NCBI RefSeq assembly: GCF_031769215.1
Contig: NW_026782798.1
Location: 186,001 to 250,000 of the forward strand
Direction: 5' to 3'
DNA length: 64,000 bases
Origin: Ylistrum balloti
Lineage: Eukaryota
The notes below the pieces were generated by a model that searched no databases, was not told the origin of the DNA, and saw only the letters and a program-made list of their open reading frames with translations. Shown here piece after piece: positions 3,701 to 55,458 of this stretch. Each line of letters opens with the position of its first letter. The first letter of the stretch is position 1. The position numbers were made by a program, and so were the translations under genes.

Positions 3701-5959
3701 TCCTTATACTGCGGCCTTTCATAAATCTGGTCATAAATAAAAACAAGTTGATTTTATTGGTAATTCTTTTTATTACTGCAGGCTCTGCCAACTGATCAAG
3801 TTTATGCTTTCTGCTGCAACGTTTTCTCAGTGAAGGATCAGAATTTGTGTAAAGTTCCAGCATGTGACAGGCGATTGGCCAGGCCCGGCTGAATCACTGC
3901 CGGAAAAGATTGTAACAGATCTATTGCCTAGTAAACTCTGTAACAATCAATTTCTACTGTAAATTCTCTCTTGGGAGAAGAGAAAATCCCTCCAACGGAT
4001 GAATGAGAAAAAAAAGGGGAGGGGGAGAAGTGAGATGTTTCGGGGATGCAATGTAAGATTGTGGGCTGGTTTGAAGAGTTTTTATTGTCTTGGAAAAAGA
4101 CATAATCCTTGAAGGTTTTTATGACCACGTCGGTCAGCTCTAGTGGTCATCTCCTCAAAGGTTCAGTGGTCACCTCCTCAGGGTAACAATCTACCATGTC
4201 TGGAAATGTGTGTAATGTTGTAAAACAATGTCTGAATATCACCAATGATTTGTCAAGTTTAACTGAAGCCAGAATCTAACTTGACTCATTTATATAAATA
4301 ATTAGCTGAGTGACCAAAGTTTTACATTCAAAACATATTAGTTATTGATGAATATATTCACAGATGTAAAATCAAAATGATATATTTTTAGGTTACAAAG
4401 TACTGCAATATGGTATTTTGATTCATTATCCTCAGTTCAAACAGGTAAAAAGATTTCAGAAATTTATATCTTTTTCAGCCATTATGCTTCGTTAATGAGA
4501 AAAGCTATCATATGTACAAAATACCTCAATAAATACAGCAGTGCACACAAACTTTTATCTTTACACAGCCTGGTAATGTAGAATAAGTTCTTCAAAGTTC
4601 ATTTATAAACAACAATTAAACGCATCAGTAATCATTCAGGAAGTTACATTTAGCCAAACACAGAGATCTATAATTGAAATTACAGTAAAAAAAGACAATG
4701 TGGAACGTAATGTTATTTCTGTACTGACAGGTTCATCTAACAAGTAAACGGTTTGTTGGATCACGTCTCTGTCTTAATTAATGACCTTGGATCAGGGACC
4801 TTAGTACAAACTGATTCACTGTCTTCTAAAAGTATACATAATGTCTATACCATCTGTACTTTTAATATTTGTCTCAGGAGTCTGTTCATTTCTGTTCATT
4901 TCTGTTCATCTCCCATCTGTAGAGCTCTCTAAGTGAGTGAGTTAAGAAAACAAATGCTGGAAGCACCTGTGTTGGAAGGTCACCTCTTTCTCCCCAACCT
5001 CTTGTAATTGAGAAAACAGCATAATGACCAAAGTAACCACTAATATATCAAACATTATAACCACATCAGCCAGGAGATATCATGGTGATCACATCCACCG
5101 ATTACTACAAACATTCTGAACACCTCTGCTTGTTACAGAGACATTTTGGTATTACACTGACAATAGAAGTCTACATAATGCACATCATGTGGAAATGTGT
5201 GGCATCTTTTTCTCAGTAATCTCTGAAATCACTTCCAGAATGCAGAGACCCTGGGCAGTGACGATGAGATAGACACCCTGTGTGATGTGCTGCTTGTGTG
5301 TGTGTTATGTTCTAGCTTGAGGGAAGCTTCTCAACTCCTTAGAGAGATAAGGGGACAAATGAGACTTGATATATTTATGGCTAAGAGATCAGGTCAAGTC
5401 ATCACCAGTATGATAATGAAAGATATTCCTAGTTTGCCAAGCCTGAGGGGGACGAAGAGAAAAGGGGGTAAGGGAGGGAAGCAGAGAAGAAGAGGGATAT
5501 AAAGAAGAATAACTAAATGGGAAGGAGTTGGAGGAGGTGAAGGAGAGAGGGTGGGGATGAGAGAGTAATGTGATCAGAATCATACTTCAACACCCCATAC
5601 ACATAGATTTGATAGTGCCAACACCCCACTGTATGCCTACTGATAGGAGATGCCCTTTCTATTGTAGGTATACCGCCATGGCCATGGTCGACTATCTCTC
5701 TTTGATAAAACCTTCCCAACACTACAGTTTATCTAGCTGTATAAACAGATAAAGGATTTCACACCTCCTTTAGTAGATAGAATACTATAGGGATAAACCA
5801 TTCCAATGAGATGAGTCTCATCAAAGGTCACAGTAACCTGTCATGTCTGACCTCTACAACCCTGTCAAGTCAGACCACCCCTGTAAAAAGATCATTCACA
5901 AAACAGTCTTAAGTGACCACTTGTTTTGTAGGACCACTACAGATAAACTTGTCTAATGT

Positions 5960-6365
5960 GACCACTAGTCATAGAATACCACTACAAACCTGTCAAATGT
6001 GACCACTTGTCATAGAATACCACTACAAACCTGTCAAATGTGACCACTTGTCATAGTACACCACTACAAACCTGTCAAATGTGACCACTTGTCATAGAAT
6101 ACCACTACAAACCTGTCAAATGTGACCACTTGTCATAGAATACCACTACAAACCTGTCAAATGTGACCACTTGTCATAGAATACCACTACAAACCTGTCA
6201 AATGTGACCACTTGTCATAGTACACCACTACAAACCTGTCAAATGTGACCACTTGTCATAGAATACCACTACAAACCTGTCAAATGTGACCACTTGTCAT
6301 AGTACACCACTACAAACCTGTCAAATGTGACCACTTGTCATAGAATACCACTACAAACCTGTCTT
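5960..6365. repeat. 41-bp tandem repeat, ~10 copies
   Basis: Unit gaccacttgtcatagaataccactacaaacctgtcaaatgt recurs at 5960, 6001, 6042 ... 6329. Confidence 0.95.
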
Positions 6366-6396
6366 TTATGACCACAATGATTACAATTTTTTTTAT

Positions 6397-6716
6397 GTGA
6401 CCACTTGTTGTAAGACAATTACAAACAAACTTGTCTGATGTGACCGTCTGTCTTGTAAGACCATTATAAACAAACTTGTCTAATGTGACCGTCTGTCTTG
6501 TAAGACCATTATAAACAAACTTGTCTAATGTGACCGTCTGTCTTGTAAGACCATTACAAACAAACTTGTCTAATGTGACCGTCTGTCTTGTAAGACCATT
6601 ACAAACAAACTTGTCTAATGTGACCGTCTGTCTTGTAAGACCATTACAAACAAACTTGTCTAATGTGACCGTCTGTCTTGTAAGACCATTACAAACAAAC
6701 TTGTCTAATGTGACCA
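6397..6716. repeat. 45-bp tandem repeat, ~7 copies
   Basis: Unit gaccgtctgtcttgtaagaccattacaaacaaacttgtctaatgt recurs at 6442, 6487 ... 6667. Explains the 15-aa-periodic ORFs 6310-6723 and 6521-6745. Confidence 0.95.
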
Positions 6717-23900: not shown

Positions 23901-26475
23901 TTGCTGATGAACATCGCTTTCAGATTTGGCAAATGCACATTCTACCATAGTAAACTTGAACCAAAGTCTCATAGACATATTATTTTTTTAACAGGTTGGT
24001 AAATTACAAGGATTCAGGTAAAACAGGTTTCACATAAAACCCTGAGTACCATTTTGGGCTTTATGTTTGAGAATTGTCTAGTTCTGGCTGTCTGTAAGCA
24101 AAATGTAATCCAAGGAAAGGCTTAACAAGGCCTAGGGACTGTCAGCAACATATCATGTGGCATAGGGCAAGTAATCCAACACTTAAGTCTAGAAGAAAAT
24201 CCTTGTTCTTAATGTCTACCTAATATAATTAGACCACTCTGTACAGTTGTGTTTATATCTGTTCAGTGGAAATCCTGGGGCATTATGGGGCACTTCTTTA
24301 ATACAGTTGGAAACATTTATTTGCATAAAACGGATTAAATATATTTATTTGTCTGGGAATAAATGACCAGAATTTTCTGAAACAAATCATTTTGTTTTTG
24401 AAAAAAAAATTTCTTCTGTTTATCAGTGAAAGGCATTGTAAGAAGGAAAATTTGTAATCTGGTAATTGATTTCAAGGGTTTGCCAAACAACACCCCTGGA
24501 GAAAGAAACTGGTCATTTCATGACCATAACTGGAGTATATGTATCAGCCAAGCAGTTTGTCTCCCTCTAGGGAGGAGCCCATGTGTCACCTTGGACAAAG
24601 CTTTCTGATTTAATGACCAGACTTTTCTTGTTCATGACTGTGGTCAAGCCTTAAGCGTTGAACAGCTTGACCATACATGCAGTCTCCCCAACAATGCATG
24701 CTGTCCACCTACAAGATTTATACCGGTCAGTTTATGGTTGAGTAAACAATAGCCACAATCAACATGTGGTGACAGAGATATTAAAATAAATTCCTATTTT
24801 CTACCAGGTGCCTTATTTCAAGATGAGTCTGTATGATAGGCCAAATGAAAAAGGTCAAAGGTTATGTTTGGACAATACTTTCACCTGGTCCCATCAAACA
24901 AGGTAAACATATTCTCATGAATAATTCCATAAGGTTTTTATGATAGATTCAATTAAAATGTAATTTGGATATAGAATACCCTATAAACGTGGGCTTAACA
25001 CACTGTCTTTCGATCTCGCTAAGATACCATATCTCATGGGAAATAGACTCACTACAAACTATAATATCGTCACACAGTATCTGTTTCCTCCTAAGGTGTT
25101 TAAAAATCAAATTTACCAGCATTGCATCAGTTTGACATCAATGATATTATTTACAGATAATATTTCATAATCTTTTGATAAGTTTCACTATGTTGTTAAA
25201 CTTGACATGCTTCAATCCATCAAACACATAGTAATGCTTATATAAAACTAATACAGATGTTTTTTCTTTTTTCTCGAATGTTGGAGGAGAATGGATGCTG
25301 CTTGTAAAGAAATATTCATAAGAACTTGAAAGAAGTGTACATGAAGAAGTCACATTTCATGAACAAGTGATGTCATATTTCATATCATTGAATAGGTGTC
25401 AGATTTCACATCCAAAGGATGTCATATTTCAAAACACTCTATATGATTTTACATCCTTTTTTTTAATACATCAAAGATCATTTCTATGTGTCTGTGGGTG
25501 TGTGTGTGTTTTTTAAAATTAAAAGTACACATATTTGGCTTATATACTTCAAATGTTCATATTTGTAAATCATACAGTTTCAGGGCATAGTCAAGCCTCG
25601 TTAATTCAGTTGCCAAAAATCCAGATGTCCCACTAACCCACTCATGTTTTACATAAAACTTCTTTACTATTCAACAGCTTCAGCAAAATATAAAAACAAA
25701 TAGATTGTAAATCAAGATAAGTGCTTTTTCAGCGACAAAAAAAAACAAATGTTAAAATGCATCCTGAAACAAGTTTTCAATTTTTTCAATTTGACTGATG
25801 CATGTCTGGACATGGAACAAGGTCTGACCTTGTGGTCACCTTTTATAGAAATAAGTGGACACCCCGCTATTGTTTGGGCGTATGTTTTGGGGCAAGGATT
25901 ATCACTAAGGCATAATAACAGACATCTTTACGCCAAGCACAGGTGCCCTGGGTATAAATCGCCATGCGAAAACATGCCTGAATGTGATTATCACTAAAGC
26001 CAAGGATGGATCTTTGTCAATTTCAATGGACAGATCGCCCGAAAATTAAGTGGTAGATAACCGTTTACCTGCAGGCCCTTTCTTATTAAAATCTAATTTT
26101 GAAAATGTTAACGAACCAAGATCTTGCTATTTATCAAAGAGATCTTTATACACAAGGGCTAAAATTAAAAAGCATAACAATACTTGAACGAACATGTGTG
26201 TCCAGTAATTGTTTAAAACCAATTTCCAGTAAATAAAATTCTAAATAACATAAAAGTGTTTCGGGTGGGTATAATGATAATGCAGTAGAGATTGTATTGG
26301 GAGAGGGTGATCATTTAGCCTACAGAGGTGGTCGGTGCCAGGTACAGGACCAACAATATAAACACAACACCTGTCCAACATAATGGGATGACACTCATCA
26401 GGAACAGGTATTAATAGTTAAAGTACAAACTAGAAACACCTTCATTGTATTTGGCCTATAAGCTCCTCAGAGTCA

Positions 26476-27147
26476 CACCCCATATTACTGGGTATTAGGA
26501 CGGTGAAGACAGATAGTGTCACACACCATATAACCGGGTATTAGGATGGTGAAGACAGCTAGTGTCACACACCATATAACTGGGGATTGGGACGGTGTAG
26601 ATATCTAGTGTCACACACCATATAACTAGGGGTTGGGATGGTGAAGACAGCTAGTGTCACACACCATATAACTGGGTATTAGGATGGTGTAGACAGCTAA
26701 TGTCACACACCATGTAATGGGGGTTGAGATGGTGAAGACAGCTAGTGTCACACTCCATATAATTGGGTATTAGGAACGTGAAGACAGCTAGTGTCACATG
26801 CAATATTACTGGGTATTAGGACGGTGAAGACAGTTAGTGTCACACCCTATATTACTGGATATTAGGACAGTGAAGACAGCTAGGGTCACATCCTATATTA
26901 CTGGGTATTAGGACAGTGAAGACAGTTAGTGTCATGTCACACACCATGTAATATGGTGAAGACAGCTAGTGTCACATATTAGGTATGGTGAAGACAAGAC
27001 AGCAATATTACTGGGTATTCACACCCTATATTACTGGATATTAGGACAGTGAAGACAGCTAGGGTCACATCCTATATTACTGGGTATTAGGACAGTGAAG
27101 ACAGTTAGTGTCACACCCCATATTACTGGGTAGTAGGACAGTGAAGA
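26476..27147. repeat. 46-bp minisatellite, diverged copies
   Basis: Unit actgggtattaggacggtgaagacagctagtgtcacacaccatata; anchors at 26487, 26533, 26579 ... Confidence 0.9.
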
Positions 27148-27596
27148 CTTTGGTCCCACCACATGACACGAGTTTTCAGGACCATAATGCTGGGTATTGG
27201 GACGGTGAAGACTGTGGTCCCACCACATGACACGAGTTTTCAGGACCATAATACTGAGTATTGGGACGGTGAAGACTGTGGTCCCACCACATGACATGAG
27301 TTTTTAGGACCATAATACTGGGTATTGGGACGGTGAAGACTGTGGTCCCACCACATGACATGAGTTTTTAGGACCATAATACTGGGTATTGGGACGGTGA
27401 AGACTGTGGTCCCACCACATGACACGAGTTTTCAGGACCATAATACTGGGTATTGGGACGGTGAAGACTGTGGTCCCACCACATGACACGAGTTTTCAGG
27501 ACCATAATACTGGGTATTGGGACGGTGAAGACTGTGGTCCCACCACATGACACGAGTTTTCAGGACCATAATACTGGGTATTGGGATGGTAGAGAC
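27148..27596. repeat. 64-bp minisatellite, ~7 near-identical copies
   Basis: Unit actgggtattgggacggtgaagactgtggtcccaccacatgacacgagttttcaggaccataat. The ORF track shows near-identical 61-aa ORFs offset by exactly 64 bp. Confidence 0.95.
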
Positions 27597-31126: not shown

Positions 31127-31132
31127 ACTTAC
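31127..31132 (-). other. Splice donor of the KIF26-like exon
   Basis: AAG|GTAAGT is a perfect consensus. Composition drops back to AT-rich just downstream. Confidence 0.85.
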
Positions 31133-32080
31133 CTTGATAACAGGGCTGATTCGATTTCCCTCTGGGCAGAGCAAACGGAAGGCTTGGCGCTTAAAGTGGA
31201 TCAGACAGTTATTACAATGTTGACAGTACCCTCCTCCGCGGGGACCTGACCTCTCCCCTCGCCCCGTTGGGGGTAGGTGAACCACAACCCTGTCATATAT
31301 CCCTGGGGCATATTTAGAGCTGACTCCTTTACCCGACGGTGGGGTTGAACACACAAATGAATTCTCATAGACTCCACTTGGACGTTTGGCTGGGGTCACA
31401 TCTGAAGATGGGGACAAGGCACGTCTCTCCTGAGACGGAGGTGAGCGACAACGGGAGGGGCCACGATCACTTAAGGGTGACATTCCCCTTTGTGGGCCCC
31501 TGTCTTTGGGAGGAGATTTACACCTTTGGGGATCATTATCACTTTCAGGTGATAAACACCTTTGTTGATATTTCCCACTAGGTGGCGACATGCACCTTTG
31601 TAGACCTCTTTCGTGCGGAGGAGATTTACACCTTTGGGGGTTGCGATCACTTTCAGGCGACAGACATCTTTGTTGATTCCTCGCACTTGGTGGAGACATA
31701 CACCTTTGCATACTCCGATCACTGACTGGAGATGCAGGCCGACCAAAAACAAACGACAACTCTGTCGCAGATTCATCTGTAAACTTAACCTGGCCTCCGT
31801 CAGTAAGTGGCGAGAATGTTCCACGAATGGGATAATCCATGATATCGTGATCCTGGGGGGCTGAGTAATCCATACAAATATCCTCACCGTTGTGGAGTGA
31901 TGGCCCCCCTCGTTTGACCCAATCTGATCCTTCTTTAATGGCTCGAAGCTCTTTCACTGTAGCAGATTTTTGGGATCTTTCTGGAGACGGTGTTGGTAAC
32001 TTTCGGATTTTTGCCTCCCCACCAAACATGTGTACCGCAGTCTTTACACTAACTGTCTCTGTGTAACCATCTTTGTCATT
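31133..32080 (-). CDS. KIF26: Internal coding exon (316 aa, phase 0/0) of a kinesin-11 / KIF26-like gene; N-terminal non-motor region
   Basis: Open frame from acceptor ttttttcgtttcttttgtaatttcag|AAT GAC AAA (NDKDGYTETVSVKTAVHMFGG...) to donor ATC AAG|GTAAGT (...RISPVIK), with GC content well above the flanks. It ends with YCQHCNNCLIHFKRQAFRLLCPEG, resembling the N-terminal motifs I recall for human KIF26A (CRHCHTKLVELKRQAWKL) and KIF26B (CENCNARLVELKRQALRLLLP). No motor-domain exon was found in the window, so the identity rests on this one motif. Confidence 0.75.
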
Positions 32081-32106
32081 CTGAAATTACAAAAGAAACG
32101 AAAAAA
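32081..32106 (-). other. Splice acceptor of the KIF26-like exon
   Basis: Minus strand reads ttttttcgtttcttttgtaatttcag, a long pyrimidine tract ending in CAG, directly upstream of the open frame. Confidence 0.8.
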
Positions 32107-39199: not shown

Positions 39200-39755
39200 T
39201 TTACCCTTATTCCCTCCTTCTTCCCTTTTATATTCATCCCCTTCCTTCTTCTCACCCTTTAACCTTCCTTCCCTCCTTCTTCCCTTTTATATTCATCCCC
39301 TTCCTTCTTCTCACCCTTTAACCTTCCTTCCCTCCTTCTTTCCTTTTATATTCATCCCCTTCCCTCTTCTTTCCCTTTAACCTTCCTTCCCTCCTCCTTC
39401 CCTTTTATGTTCATCCCCTTCTCTTCACCTTTTACCTTTCTCCCCTCCTTCCCTTTTATGTTCATCCCTTTCTCTTCACCTTTTACCTTTCTCCCCTCCT
39501 TCCCTTGTATGTTCATCCCCTTCTCTTCACCTTTTACCTTTCTCCCCTCCTTCCCTTTTATGTTCATCCCTTTCTCTTCACCTTTTACCTTTCTCCCCTC
39601 CTTCCCTTTTATGTTCATCCCTTTCTCTTCACCTTTTACCTTTCTCCCCTCCTTCCCTTGTATGTTCATCCCCTTCTCTTCACCTTTTACCTTTCTCCCC
39701 TCCTTCCCTTTTATGTTCATCCCTTTCTCTTCACCTTTTACCTTCCTTCCCTCCT
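39200..39755. repeat. 51-bp polypyrimidine/polypurine minisatellite, ~10 copies
   Basis: Unit ttcccttttatgttcatccctttctcttcaccttttacctttctcccctcc. Source of the 17-aa-periodic ORFs 39352-39720, 39407-39823 and 39505-39819. Confidence 0.95.
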
Positions 39756-42736
39756 TCTACCCTCACAGCCTCACAGCTGTGGTATTACAACAAAGCAGAC
39801 TAAGTGGTCAGAAAAATAAATAAAATGAAAATACATTGCTCAAATCTGATTGGAAATTGAATTCTTGTAGCCAAAAAATGACAAAATTGGAAAAATACTT
39901 AATATGGTTGAAAGTGAGATTTGTAAAAAGATTTGACTACTGAAATTTTGGCCCAAAAACATCAAGACTGGGGAGAGTCTCATATAGTAAGTATTGTCAA
40001 AGGTTTCTGAAAACAACAAAGATGCCTGACTGGACATTGACCTCTAAAGTCACGAAAAAAAATTCTGAGCATCATCTGTGTGTGACATCTGAGCATAAAT
40101 AACACCTTTATCATGATCTGGCTAGCTCAGACACCACATAGCTCACATTTCATATAATTTCATTTCATCAGATAAAGTGAAATGAAAACACAACATCCTA
40201 TTTCCTCTCTGGGGTGGTAGAGTTGTGTCCATGGTTGCGGTGCTGACCGGACAGACTTAAAACCTGTCTCTATCCCACTGCTAACAGATCTAATCTCACT
40301 ATCAAGTATTATCCAAAATTTTCATTTTTTTTCACCCCATAATTGAAATCATTTACAGAAAAATTGTTTCATGCTGTGAAACTTTTGGTGACATTATGAC
40401 AGCATTTGCCCATATGTTTAAAGGTAATGAAAGTGTCGGATATAAAAACTGATGTTTTACAGATTTTTGATAATTGGTTAAAAGTAGTTTGTACATATAA
40501 AAATAATTTCTAAAATCTAAACTTAAGAAACTGTAATTTACAATGCACCACGTTTATTTCAAAAACTGAAAACAAACTTGAATGTTGAATACATGTGCAT
40601 TGATAAAATCAAAATGTCCTCATTTTTTTGTTTAATAGCAAAATCATCGTCTTTCCAATTTAACCTGCAAATTCTTACATGTTTATACTCAGTATCATCA
40701 GTAACTATTTTTGACTTTTAAGATGTGCCTTTCTTGTACCCAATACAACTATATATAACAGACATTTATAGATTGAAAACAATTATTACAATCTCACACC
40801 GAAGCTTGGCCAAAAACTTACGCTGTAACAATAATAATCCTACATGCCATCTCACCTGGCAAGGTAAAAAAAACCCAGTTATCGTCAGCAACAGCTTACC
40901 TGGTATTCATCTCACCTGTCTAGTGGTAGTGTCACCTCCCCAACAAACAGACGCCCAATGAAACTCTTCCCATAGGCTTTCTAGCTTTTAACAGATGACC
41001 CGAAACTTGTGCATTCATAATGTCACATGAAACACATATTATCCTCAATTTATAGCTTGGCCTGGTTCATGAAACACTTGATTCTTGTCGAGTTCTTTGA
41101 AGATTTTTAATATGAATTGGTATGTAGGTAAACTTGTTATGTTTATATCTACCTTCAGAAGGTCAACAGCATTAATAAAATTCCCCAAGTAAATTAGGAT
41201 TGTATCAGATCATTTTTCACCTCTTAGTATCCAAACAGTTTCTTACAAATTTTATACCCATCTTTTTGCAGGCATTAAGCTTTATCATCAATTTCATTCT
41301 TTTCAAAACCTTTGTTCGTTTTACCCTGTCATTGCCTACCCCCTTCTATCCCCCTCCCCCTCTCCTCTCCCTCCCTTCTCTTAACTCCTGACTCTCTCAA
41401 CAGATTTGTGAATGCTATAACTTATACAGCCCCCTGATATTAAGTGTACCTAGTGTATAGACACAACTATTATTGTAGACTATAAACTCAATTTTATGCG
41501 TTTAGATATAAGGCAGACAATTTAATCCAACAAATCTTAAAGAAAACTGAAAATGACACTTAAACCAAGGGGGATGTTAGCTTTGATAATTCTAAGCAGG
41601 AAAAATGAAACAAAATTTTCTCATGTCATAGAATTGAATAAAATCTTTCAAAAAGGGTAAAAAGAAATTTACATAAAATACATAAAAGATTTAAATTGTG
41701 TTTAATGTTGAAATTCCATTTTTAAAATGAAGGAAACTTGAAAGCAACGACAGTTAAAGTTAGTTTAATGGTTTCAAGATACTTTTTACATATATAACTG
41801 AAGAAGGCAAGGCAGACACATAGGATAAGAATAAAAAGTATATTTTTAAGATATATTTTTGCACCAGAATGTTTCATATAGTACTTAGATCTATCAATAT
41901 AACAGAAAATTAGGACTCTATGAAAAAGTCACTAGGATGAACCATTTTCTGTTTATCTGTAACTTACTTTTAAGTTTTCTTAATTCTGACATTCCATTTC
42001 AATTGCTTAATTTTTTTTTTTTTTTGCTACAATTGAAATTCAGAATAAATTCAAACATGGCAATTAATCACTGACATGCTTGCAAAAACAAAACCCACAA
42101 ACCTTGACCGCATTCGCCGACGGCCTTCTGTCAAAGTTCACGCCATGTGGAAATGGCGAATTACATTACCCAGAATCCTTTGCCACGGACAGTGTGTAAA
42201 ACCCCACCCCTGGTTTTGATTATTAGTAGAGATTTAACTCTGATCGGGGACAGAGAACATTATATGAAAACAGCTGTGATTCTCCATTCCTTTGTCCAGC
42301 ATAAGCCAATATCAGCTACCTGCTTATAAATGGACACTTGCGGCCATCTTAGTCACTTATAATGGGCACTCCTTAGCATCTCATTGTTCAAGCTTTTGTT
42401 GTCCGAGGTCACTCTGAACAGGGAATGCATGTGATGCTTTGTACAAAAGAAAGCAAAATCCCGCATGAATTATTACAATAATCAGAAACATAAAAGGTTT
42501 CTATCTTCAACCGCTGTCTGCACGCTTTATTTTATCCTTGAAATTAATTCCGATCTCACATCCTTGTGACAAAATTCATCCATTTTTTGTTTGACCCTTT
42601 TCTCCTTTAAATCACAAGTATTAATGTGAAAAAGACATATTTAAACACATGCATTTGTCATTTTGCCTTTTAAGTTTGTCTGGCAAAAATAAATTAATCT
42701 GTTTCCATTTCTCCTTCATCTCTCCCTCCCTCCCTC

Positions 42737-49092: not shown

Positions 49093-49925
49093 GAGAGTTT
49101 ATGTGTAGGTAGAGTCTATATGTTGGTAGAGTTTAAGTGTTGTTAGAGTCTATGTGTTGGTAGTGTCTATGTGTTGGTAGAGTCTATGTGTTGGTAGAGT
49201 CTATATGTTGGTAGTGTCTATATGTTGGTAGTCTATGTGTTGGTAGTGTCTATATGTTGGTAGTCTATGTGTTGGTAGTGTCTATATGTTGGTATATGTT
49301 GGTAGAGTTTATGTGTTGGTAGAGTCTATGTGTTGGTAGAGTCTATGTGTTGGTAGAGTCTATGTGTTGGTAGAGTTTATGTGTTGGTAGAGTTTGTGTG
49401 TAGGTAGAGTCTATATGTTGATAGAGTTTATGGTAGAGTCTATGGTAGAGTCTATGTGTTGGTAGAGTTTATGTGTTGGTAGAGTTTGCGTGTTGGTAGA
49501 GTCAATGTGTTGGTAGAGTTTATGTGTTGGTAGAGTCTATATGTTGGTAGAGTCTATGTGTTGGTAGAGTCTATATGTTGGTAGTGTCTATGTGTTGGTA
49601 GAGTCAATGTGTTGGTAGAGTTTATGTGTTGGTAGAGTCAATGTGTTGGTAGAGTCAATGTGTTGGTAGAGTTTATGTGTTGGTAGAGTCTATATGTTGG
49701 TAGAGTTTATATGTTGGTAGTGTCTATGTGTTGGTAGAGTCAATGTGTTGGTAGAGTTCATGTGTTGGTAGAGTCAATGTGTTGGTAGAGTTTATGTGTT
49801 GATAGAGTCTATATGTTGGTAGAGTTTATGTGTTGGTAGAGTCTATATGTTGGTAGTGTCTATGTGTTGGTAGAGTCAATGTGTTGGTAGAGTTTATGTG
49901 TTGGTAGAGTCTATAAGTTGGTATT
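49093..49925. repeat. 17-bp minisatellite (tatgtgttggtagagtc), roughly 48 copies
   Basis: Period of 17 read directly (49151, 49168 ...), with single-base variants. Confidence 0.95.
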
Positions 49926-54419: not shown

Positions 54420-55458
54420 ACCTCTTTAGACATACTTATAATAAAACAATACCTGTTCTAAGATCATGATCTATAGAAAAATACTGTCTGTATTGAGACC
54501 TGTCATGAATTACAACCATGCTGTATGGAGAAACCGGTCGTGAATAACACCCAAGCTGTATTAAGAGACAAGTCATAAATGACAACCTAGCTATATCGAA
54601 GGACCTGTCACAATTAACAACCAAGCTGTATTGAAAGACAGGTCATGAATTACACTCTGTAATGAGAGACCAGGCATAAATGGTGACCTGTATTAAGAGA
54701 AATGTTCTGAATGACAACCTGTACTGTGAGACTTATCATGAATGGTGATCTGTATTGAGAGACTTGTCATGAATGACAACCTGTATCAAGAGACTTGTTG
54801 TGAATGACAACCTGTATTGAGAGATTTGTTGTGAATGACAACCTGTATTGAGAGACTGGGCATGAATGACAACCTGTATCGCGAGACTTGTCATGAATGA
54901 CAACCTGTATTGAGAGACTTGTCATGAATGACGACCTGTATCAAGAGACTTGTCATGAATGACAACCTCTATCGAGACTTGTTGTGAATGACAACCTGTA
55001 TCGCGAGACTTGTCATGAATGACAACCTGTATCACGAGACTTGTCATGAATGACAACCTGCATCGAGACTTGTTGTGAATGACAACCTGTATCGAGAGAC
55101 TTATCATGAATGACAACCTGTATTGAGAGACTGGGCATGAATGACAACCTGTATCAAGACTTGTGAATGACAACCTGTATCGAGACTTGTTGTGAATGAC
55201 AACCTGTATCGCGAGACTTGTCATGAATGACAACCTGTATCGAGAGACTTATCATGAATGACAACCTGTATCGGGAGACTTGTCATGAATGACAACCTGT
55301 ATCGAGAGACTTGTCATGAATGACAACCTGTATCACGAGACTTGTCATGAATGACAACCTGTATCGCGAGACTTGTCATGAATGACAACTTGTATTGAGA
55401 GATTTGTTGTGAATGACAACCTGTATCGAGACTTGTCATGAATGACAACCTGTATTGA
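54420..55458. repeat. 29-31-bp minisatellite (atgaatgacaacctgtatcgagagacttgtc); degenerate at the left end, homogeneous over ~54700-55455
   Basis: Repeated gaatgacaacctgtat core; explains ORF 54922-55233. Confidence 0.95.

Follow-up and report, generated by a model that had tools for sequence, protein, structure and literature searches.

The question raised by this locus of Ylistrum balloti is how an exon from the N-terminal region of a KIF26-like kinesin came to carry ten Arg-x-x-Ser-Pro (RxxSP) motifs in nearly strict 12-residue register, and whether the array so formed is maintained for a function or is only tolerated. Kinesin-11 proteins (KIF26A/B, VAB-8) are non-motile motors with degenerate nucleotide-binding motifs, and members of the KIF26 group have scaffolding roles in signalling through Wnt5a-Ror and planar polarity as well as in the development of kidney and neurons. 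Coordinates given here refer to the window, that is, the whole 64,000-nucleotide stretch of DNA that was analysed (C941:186001-250000, with C941 being contig NW_026782798.1), unless they carry the contig prefix. The array is contained in one exon, with the following landmarks.

31133..32080, minus strand: coding exon of the N-terminal region of a KIF26-like kinesin-11 (948 nt, 316 aa, open frame)
31988..32014, minus strand: conserved N-terminal motif AKIRKLPTP, which holds a T-P site (invariant columns of alignment A1)
31805..31840, minus strand: conserved motif MDYPIRGTFSPL, which holds an S-P site (invariant columns of alignment A1)
31169..31225, minus strand: CxxCxxC helix with which PF23081, the tri-helical domain of KIF26A/B, begins (Pfam and AlphaFold2)

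The exon is in phase 0 at each end and is delimited on the minus strand by a polypyrimidine tract with AG at 32081-32082 as the acceptor and by GTAAGT at 31127-31132 as the donor, the GT being at 31131-31132. Homologous exons of other molluscs align with it over its entire length; the MDYPIRGTFSPL motif recurs in gastropod orthologues, and the N-terminal motifs of the exon are common to the bivalve Mactra. In Pfam, the exon gave no repeat family and only a weak start of PF23081 (domain positions 1-24 at the exon end; E 0.022, 15.4 bits, below the cut-off when taken alone). Domain positions 38-83 were found on the next exon of the same strand (C941:171608-171739; 27.2 bits, at the curated cut-off), which contains a CxxC and lies ~45 kb further on, beyond an intron of ~45 kb (C941:171758-217132). 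PF23081 is present in every homologue of the exon that was obtained by word search. Pieces of the kinesin motor (PF00225) were located on the same strand at C941:82218-82412 and 67780-67926, and the KIF26-like protein P0065 of Patella caerulea gave thirteen colinear same-strand matches that descend from C941:218 kb to 62.7 kb. The tri-helical domain, the motor pieces and the colinearity with P0065 therefore define a kinesin-11 gene with very long introns, spanning at least 155 kb for roughly 1800 coding codons, as judged from exons searched singly; the assignment to a KIF26-like kinesin, made earlier from the letters of the DNA, is thus upheld. Rfam returned no match in the 64-kb window. The Ylistrum balloti genome has a single KIF26-like locus. 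In Patella caerulea, two KIF26-like genes, P0040 (SNE40_010389) and P0065 (SNE40_010388), lie next to each other on a single scaffold, and the exon with RPxSP, RCxSP and RPLSP is present in only one annotated product of this pair.

One might suppose that one is not dealing with expressed coding sequence here, but with a mispredicted exon or the fragment of a pseudogene, and the run search made with the exon is compatible with this idea, as it found the exon in five DNA runs and in no RNA run. The idea is extremely unlikely, however, considering the 316-codon open frame with its consensus splice sites, the end-to-end alignment with exons from mollusc genes annotated as KIF26B, the intact and colinear remainder of the gene, and a divergence pattern, described further below, that is typical of coding sequence under selection.

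Translation of the minus strand confirms the coordinates and the order of the ten RxxSP motifs as they had been claimed in the sequence-only reading, together with their spacing, nine being exactly 12 aa apart and the tenth following after 10 aa, and with the Cys that comes directly after Arg in seven of the ten. The individual motifs are these.

31409..31741, minus strand: full set of ten RxxSP motifs (minus-strand translation, as for each motif below)
31741-31727, minus strand: motif 1, RPASP
31705-31691, minus strand: motif 2, RCMSP
31669-31655, minus strand: motif 3, RCLSP
31633-31619, minus strand: motif 4, RCKSP
31597-31583, minus strand: motif 5, RCMSP
31561-31547, minus strand: motif 6, RCLSP
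31525-31511, minus strand: motif 7, RCKSP
31489-31475, minus strand: motif 8, RGMSP
31453-31439, minus strand: motif 9, RCRSP
31423-31409, minus strand: motif 10, RALSP

Chance does not account for this number: in 20,000 shuffled versions of the exon sequence, RxxSP averaged 0.45 occurrences, with five as the maximum.

The origin of the array is clarified by comparison with orthologues. A profile that combined the exon with six homologues of exon size, searched against 1.84 billion representative proteins, recovered 36 proteins, of which all the named ones are from molluscs (Aplysia, Elysia, Nucella, Patella and the bivalve Mactra); Gigantopelta, Physella and bird KIF26B came from a further homologue search. 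When the linker, taken as the stretch from the FVFGRP anchor to the CxxCxxC helix, was compared among 26 other distinct mollusc sequences, a shared plan emerged in which RPxSP is followed 12-13 residues on by RCxSP, often in the form RCxSPP, and 9-10 residues later by a site of RxLSP type. The linker begins with RP in all 26 orthologues and with RPx[ST]P in 21; RC.SP is present in 22 and C.SP in 24 of them. Among the 26 are linkers from Aplysia, Physella, Patella, Elysia, Nucella, Gigantopelta and Mactra, and gastropod linkers have an extra RVLSPP site. In the closest points of reference, the KIF26-like N-termini of Aplysia (XP_035824100), Physella (KIF26B isoform X2) and Patella (SNE40_010388), the same exon carries the same flanking motifs and the same order of RPxSP, RCxSP(P) and RxLSP ahead of the PF23081 CxxCxxC helix, yet there are only one to five RxxSP and there is no 36-aa higher-order repeat of the kind seen in Ylistrum balloti. 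Across the 26 other molluscs, a linker of 54-146 aa holds one to five RxxSP and at most two RCxSP units (0-2; two in Aplysia and in P0001), compared to 172 aa, ten RxxSP and seven RCxSP, amid eight amplified units, in the present case. None of the orthologues recovered has an array of comparable size, which agrees with the earlier claim that the array is unusual. Since the first and the last motif correspond to ancestral sites 1 and 3, it is the eight units in the middle that represent an amplification of site 2, and the whole is described by the following elements.

31727..31756, minus strand: ancestral site 1, the SFVFGRPASP anchor (FVFGRP invariant in the 7-sequence alignment)
31424..31711, minus strand: eight tandem 12-aa units of the type x-Q-R-C-x-S-P-x-S-x-x-x (amplified ancestral site 2, RCxSP(P))
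31604..31711, minus strand: higher-order repeat copy 1, with M, L and K units, 36 aa (108-nt period in Tandem Repeats Finder)
31496..31603, minus strand: higher-order repeat copy 2, 36 aa (Tandem Repeats Finder and comparison with copy 1)
31424..31495, minus strand: two further units, RGMSP and RCRSP (unit comparison)
31391..31423, minus strand: ancestral site 3, RALSPSSDVTP (orthologous to mollusc R[PA][LMR]SP, found in 21 of 26)

Tandem Repeats Finder detected a period of 108 nt, corresponding to 36 aa, with 75-82% matches at 31509-31733, and the higher-order unit is a triplet of 12-aa units (M, L, K) present in two full copies plus two extra units. The units of copy 1 are 75-83% identical to the matching units of copy 2. 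From the 108-nt period it follows that the strict spacing derives from tandem duplication; the regular 12-aa step is therefore explained by duplication and need not matter functionally, and spacings of 12 aa and 10 aa occur in single-copy relatives as well. The RCRSP unit, with RALSP 10 aa on, looks like the copy in ancestral position, and the relative P0002 has RCRSPP and then RALSP, likewise at 10-aa spacing. One ancestral unit gave rise to three (M, L, K), and the 36-aa block was then duplicated to arrive at eight units, which now sit, with the older RPxSP and RxLSP sites on either side, between the N-terminal motifs and the tri-helical domain. On the evidence of these alignments, a lineage-specific expansion of the ancestral RCxSP(P) motif is well supported. 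The sequence-only reading, which had envisaged a lineage-specific module added to the kinesin, was correct as regards the lineage-specific expansion; the module was not added, however, in that RCxSP(P) was already in place in 22 of the 26 mollusc orthologues. A word search with the array alone, in a 5.8-billion-protein collection and covering proteins of 174-553 aa, with records near this genome possibly withheld, gave nothing at E 0.01 or better, which speaks only weakly for absence, and a feature search of the ESM Atlas with the array gave no usable match.

The same position has been enlarged elsewhere. In KIF26B of Gigantopelta aegis (P0066), an unrelated 8-aa tandem repeat of SHSE(K/R)Q type occupies residues ~225-295 of the protein, at the same linker position and right after its single RCLSP motif, so the linker position tolerates expansion, and the linker appears to be prone to independent expansions. 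One is thus led to ask if the extra copies in Ylistrum balloti are a low-complexity expansion by slippage or unequal crossing-over, tolerated without a function of its own, in which case conservation would reflect merely the avoidance of harmful residues. The repeat grown independently in Gigantopelta, the paired RCxSP units of Aplysia and P0001, the variable linker length in other molluscs and the abundance of minisatellites in the window would all be in keeping with such an origin. The minisatellites lie in intron or flank at 5945-6715, 26472-27590, 39216-39757, 49094-49923 and 54622-55458; the units of window minisatellites measure 41, 45, 46, 64, 51, 17 and 31 nt, with up to 49 copies that are mostly 82-98% identical, and some of them give long spurious open reading frames on both strands.

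The pattern of divergence within the array speaks against mere tolerance. Between the two higher-order copies, over 36 codons, 13.5 of 21.8 synonymous sites differ (pS 0.62, or ~1.3 after correction) as opposed to 10.5 of 86.2 non-synonymous sites (pN 0.12), an excess of synonymous change with P ~2e-4; synonymous divergence is hence near saturation and the protein has been kept (pN/pS ~0.2). All of the non-synonymous changes, about ten in number, fall outside Q-R-C-x-S-P (P ~0.004). When every pair among the eight units is compared, pN/pS comes to 0.14 within the motif and 0.68 in the spacers; motif residues are thus far better conserved than spacers, the point that the sequence-only reading had wanted checked. 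Several different codons are used for Arg, Ser and Pro from one unit to the next; the retention of motif residues through varied codons is what long-standing constraint at the level of protein yields. Contigs from four other DNA samples, belonging to two studies, cover the array at ~99% identity without any indel, and the variants they have within it are three synonymous SNPs and one spacer change of R to Q. The coding units are 53-83% identical to one another, compared to 90-98% for the units of nearby intronic minisatellites. Given that pS greatly exceeds pN, that Q-R-C-x-S-P is untouched and that the length is constant, the expansion is old and constrained: measured against present polymorphism the array is old, its length does not vary in the sampled DNA, and it is under purifying selection, most strongly on Q-R-C-x-S-P. 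Both the synonymous excess and the lack of length polymorphism characterize it as a coding repeat under selection, distinct from a neutral minisatellite. Tolerated expansion by itself is accordingly unlikely, and because of the divergence pattern between units it is less likely than the phosphorylation cluster discussed in the following. Outside the array, the other samples show Pro to Ala at 31903 (exon residue 60; four of four samples) and Thr to Met at 31266 (exon residue 272; one sample).

In terms of structure, an AlphaFold2 run on the seven-sequence alignment placed the array at pLDDT ~40-50 without secondary structure, the only confident element being a helix of residues 288-305 (pLDDT up to 89) at the PF23081 start. 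The array consists to 78% of P/S/R/Q/E/K/G/D/N and to 11% of hydrophobic residues, and it has a net charge of +11. The low pLDDT together with this composition makes a disordered state likely, and the array is thus predicted to form a disordered linker.

As to what a constrained and probably disordered array of this kind could do, a cue is provided by the residues that are kept. The RxxSP motif had been read as a DYRK-type consensus, and the literature supports this, DYRK1A showing preference for Arg at P-3 and Pro at P+1, with variation among DYRK substrates (PMC3677093). The pattern of Arg P-3 and Pro P+1 is matched, at the level of consensus, by all ten sites. In comparison, the full CDK consensus with K/R at +3 occurs in just one of the ten, the second RCKSPPK unit, and a MAPK pattern with Pro at -2 likewise in one. 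Ser is found at +3 in seven of the nine periodic sites (eight of ten overall), a feature not conserved in other molluscs. With Arg -3 and Pro +1 fitting throughout and few matches to CDK and MAPK, a phosphorylation cluster is favoured: we consider it somewhat short of an even chance, yet the leading interpretation of the motif content, that the array is a multisite cluster for proline-directed phosphorylation whose valency has been raised. The units would be the places at which a proline-directed kinase with selectivity for Arg at -3, of the DYRK, HIPK or CLK type, docks and phosphorylates, and the Ser at +3 might become open to CK1 once the S-P site has been primed. Going from three to ten sites would increase the valency and possibly make the phosphorylation-dependent control of the kinesin N-terminal region steeper, candidate targets of such control being protein stability, partner binding or autoinhibition. 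The conserved Cys would probably be part of the recognition by reader or kinase, or else the site of a second modification.

This last residue is central to a different view, according to which the units are a multivalent motif whose recognition does not depend on phosphorylation, or which acts via its cysteines, with the S-P doing no more than keeping the chain extended; the seven evenly spaced Cys could be used for S-palmitoylation, for metal binding near the CxxCxxC helix, or for redox-sensitive disulfides. To our knowledge, Cys at -2 is not part of any common consensus for proline-directed kinases, and this Cys is conserved to the degree of Ser-Pro, being invariant in alignment A1, part of the C.SP in 24 of 26 linkers, and lost from only one of the eight amplified units (RGMSP). 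The linker furthermore ends in a Cys-rich helix, with a CxxC on the next exon. Against the cysteine-based view, Arg, Ser and Pro are equally invariant and jointly fit a kinase preference, the AlphaFold2 fold brings no cysteines together, and disulfides are uncommon in the cytosol. On balance we find it rather unlikely that the cysteines alone, or a motif read in the unmodified state, explain the array.

Alternatively, the phosphorylated units might bind 14-3-3 proteins, or basophilic kinases or CDK/MAPK might be employed in place of a DYRK-type enzyme. Both 14-3-3 proteins and basophilic kinases disfavour Pro at +1, a residue that stands in all ten sites; a 14-3-3 mode I site free of Pro +1 is found nowhere in the array. 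Five of the ten sites do have Arg -3 with Pro +2 and so resemble mode I, and the minimal S-P of CDK and MAPK is contained in every site. Vertebrate KIF26B is moreover a substrate of CDK, at C-terminal sites (PMC3387196). With Pro +1 throughout, and with K/R +3 and Pro -2 confined to one site each, 14-3-3 binding or the use of these other kinases is judged very unlikely.

Comparison with vertebrates adds a further dimension to the phosphorylation cluster as the preferred reading. Bird KIF26B lacks RxxSP before the motor domain. The sequence-only reading, which listed no such array for vertebrate KIF26A/B, needs amendment in that four bird KIF26B sequences (P0069, P0075, P0079, P0082) have an identical run of eight S-P sites at residues 70-120 with a step of ~7 aa (spacings of 7, 7, 5, 7, 7, 7 and 10 residues within a Gly/Ser/Pro run), which directly precedes the homologous CxHC helix at residue 129. 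Molluscs are therefore not alone in having an SP cluster at this place. The bird run, exemplified by P0069 and P0075, resembles the array in being a quasi-periodic, apparently low-complexity S-P cluster in front of the same Cys-helix, and it differs by its step of ~7 aa, its richness in Gly, and its lack of Arg -3 and of Cys. There is no sequence similarity between the two, so they probably arose independently. For the N-terminal S-P run of vertebrate KIF26B, no described function was found in the literature. CDK phosphorylation in the C-terminal part of KIF26B leads to NEDD4 binding (PMC3387196), the WNT5A-responsive degradation domain is C-terminal, and the N-terminal region is named without being assigned a function (PMC5924538). 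Mouse Kif26b is represented by many phosphopeptides (PMC5590807). The phospho-regulation known for vertebrate KIF26B is thus C-terminal, not N-terminal, which counts against the N-terminal reading.

A bolder proposal would combine the two chemistries, the array then being a multivalent switch that joins proline-directed phosphorylation with a Cys modification (lipid, metal or redox) on a kinesin-11 scaffold, and the vertebrate SP arrays pointing to an overlooked control element common to KIF26 proteins. This we regard as quite unlikely; if true, the activity or stability of the protein would respond steeply to both kinase and redox state.

The importance of the locus lies in the observation that molluscs conserve a group of Ser-Pro motifs in the KIF26 N-terminal region, one of which was amplified and then held by selection. 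The mollusc motif set and the unrelated SP run of birds point to a putative regulatory element common to the KIF26 family. The array is to be understood as a well-documented evolutionary observation, not as a demonstrated mechanism, and it might be a convenient natural substrate, considering that its Arg/Lys-bounded units would yield short, distinct tryptic peptides.

A lookalike elsewhere in the genome, at C128:1094800-1096243 (L013, L014), was considered as a related array and rejected, for its DNA matches that of the array at 14-16 of 36 bases, as do shuffled controls (mean 15). It is a 36-nt satellite of near-identical units, translated with a 12-aa period of QRMSSPVSTE type, and other frames of it are open too. 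The protein identity to the array is ~40%, the best of many low-complexity matches in a protein search of the genome.

Among well-known systems, the regulatory domain of NFAT has SP motifs that are primed by DYRK and extended by CK1/GSK3. The array is comparable in forming a cluster of R-x-x-S-P type in a disordered regulatory region where priming is conceivable; it is unlike NFAT in that there is no homology and the mechanism in the present case is a proposal based on sequence. The KSP repeats of neurofilament H/M and the heptads of the RNA polymerase II CTD are disordered tandem S-P arrays, of which the phosphorylation has been shown experimentally, the copy number differs between lineages, and the reading is done by proline-directed kinases. 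With these the array shares tandem S-P sites in disordered regions of large proteins, and it is distinguished from them by motif and unit length, having Arg at -3 and Cys at -2. Apart from the conserved Cys, which is its unexplained feature, the array of Ylistrum balloti is a tandem S-P motif array of the sort familiar from disordered cytoskeletal and scaffold proteins.
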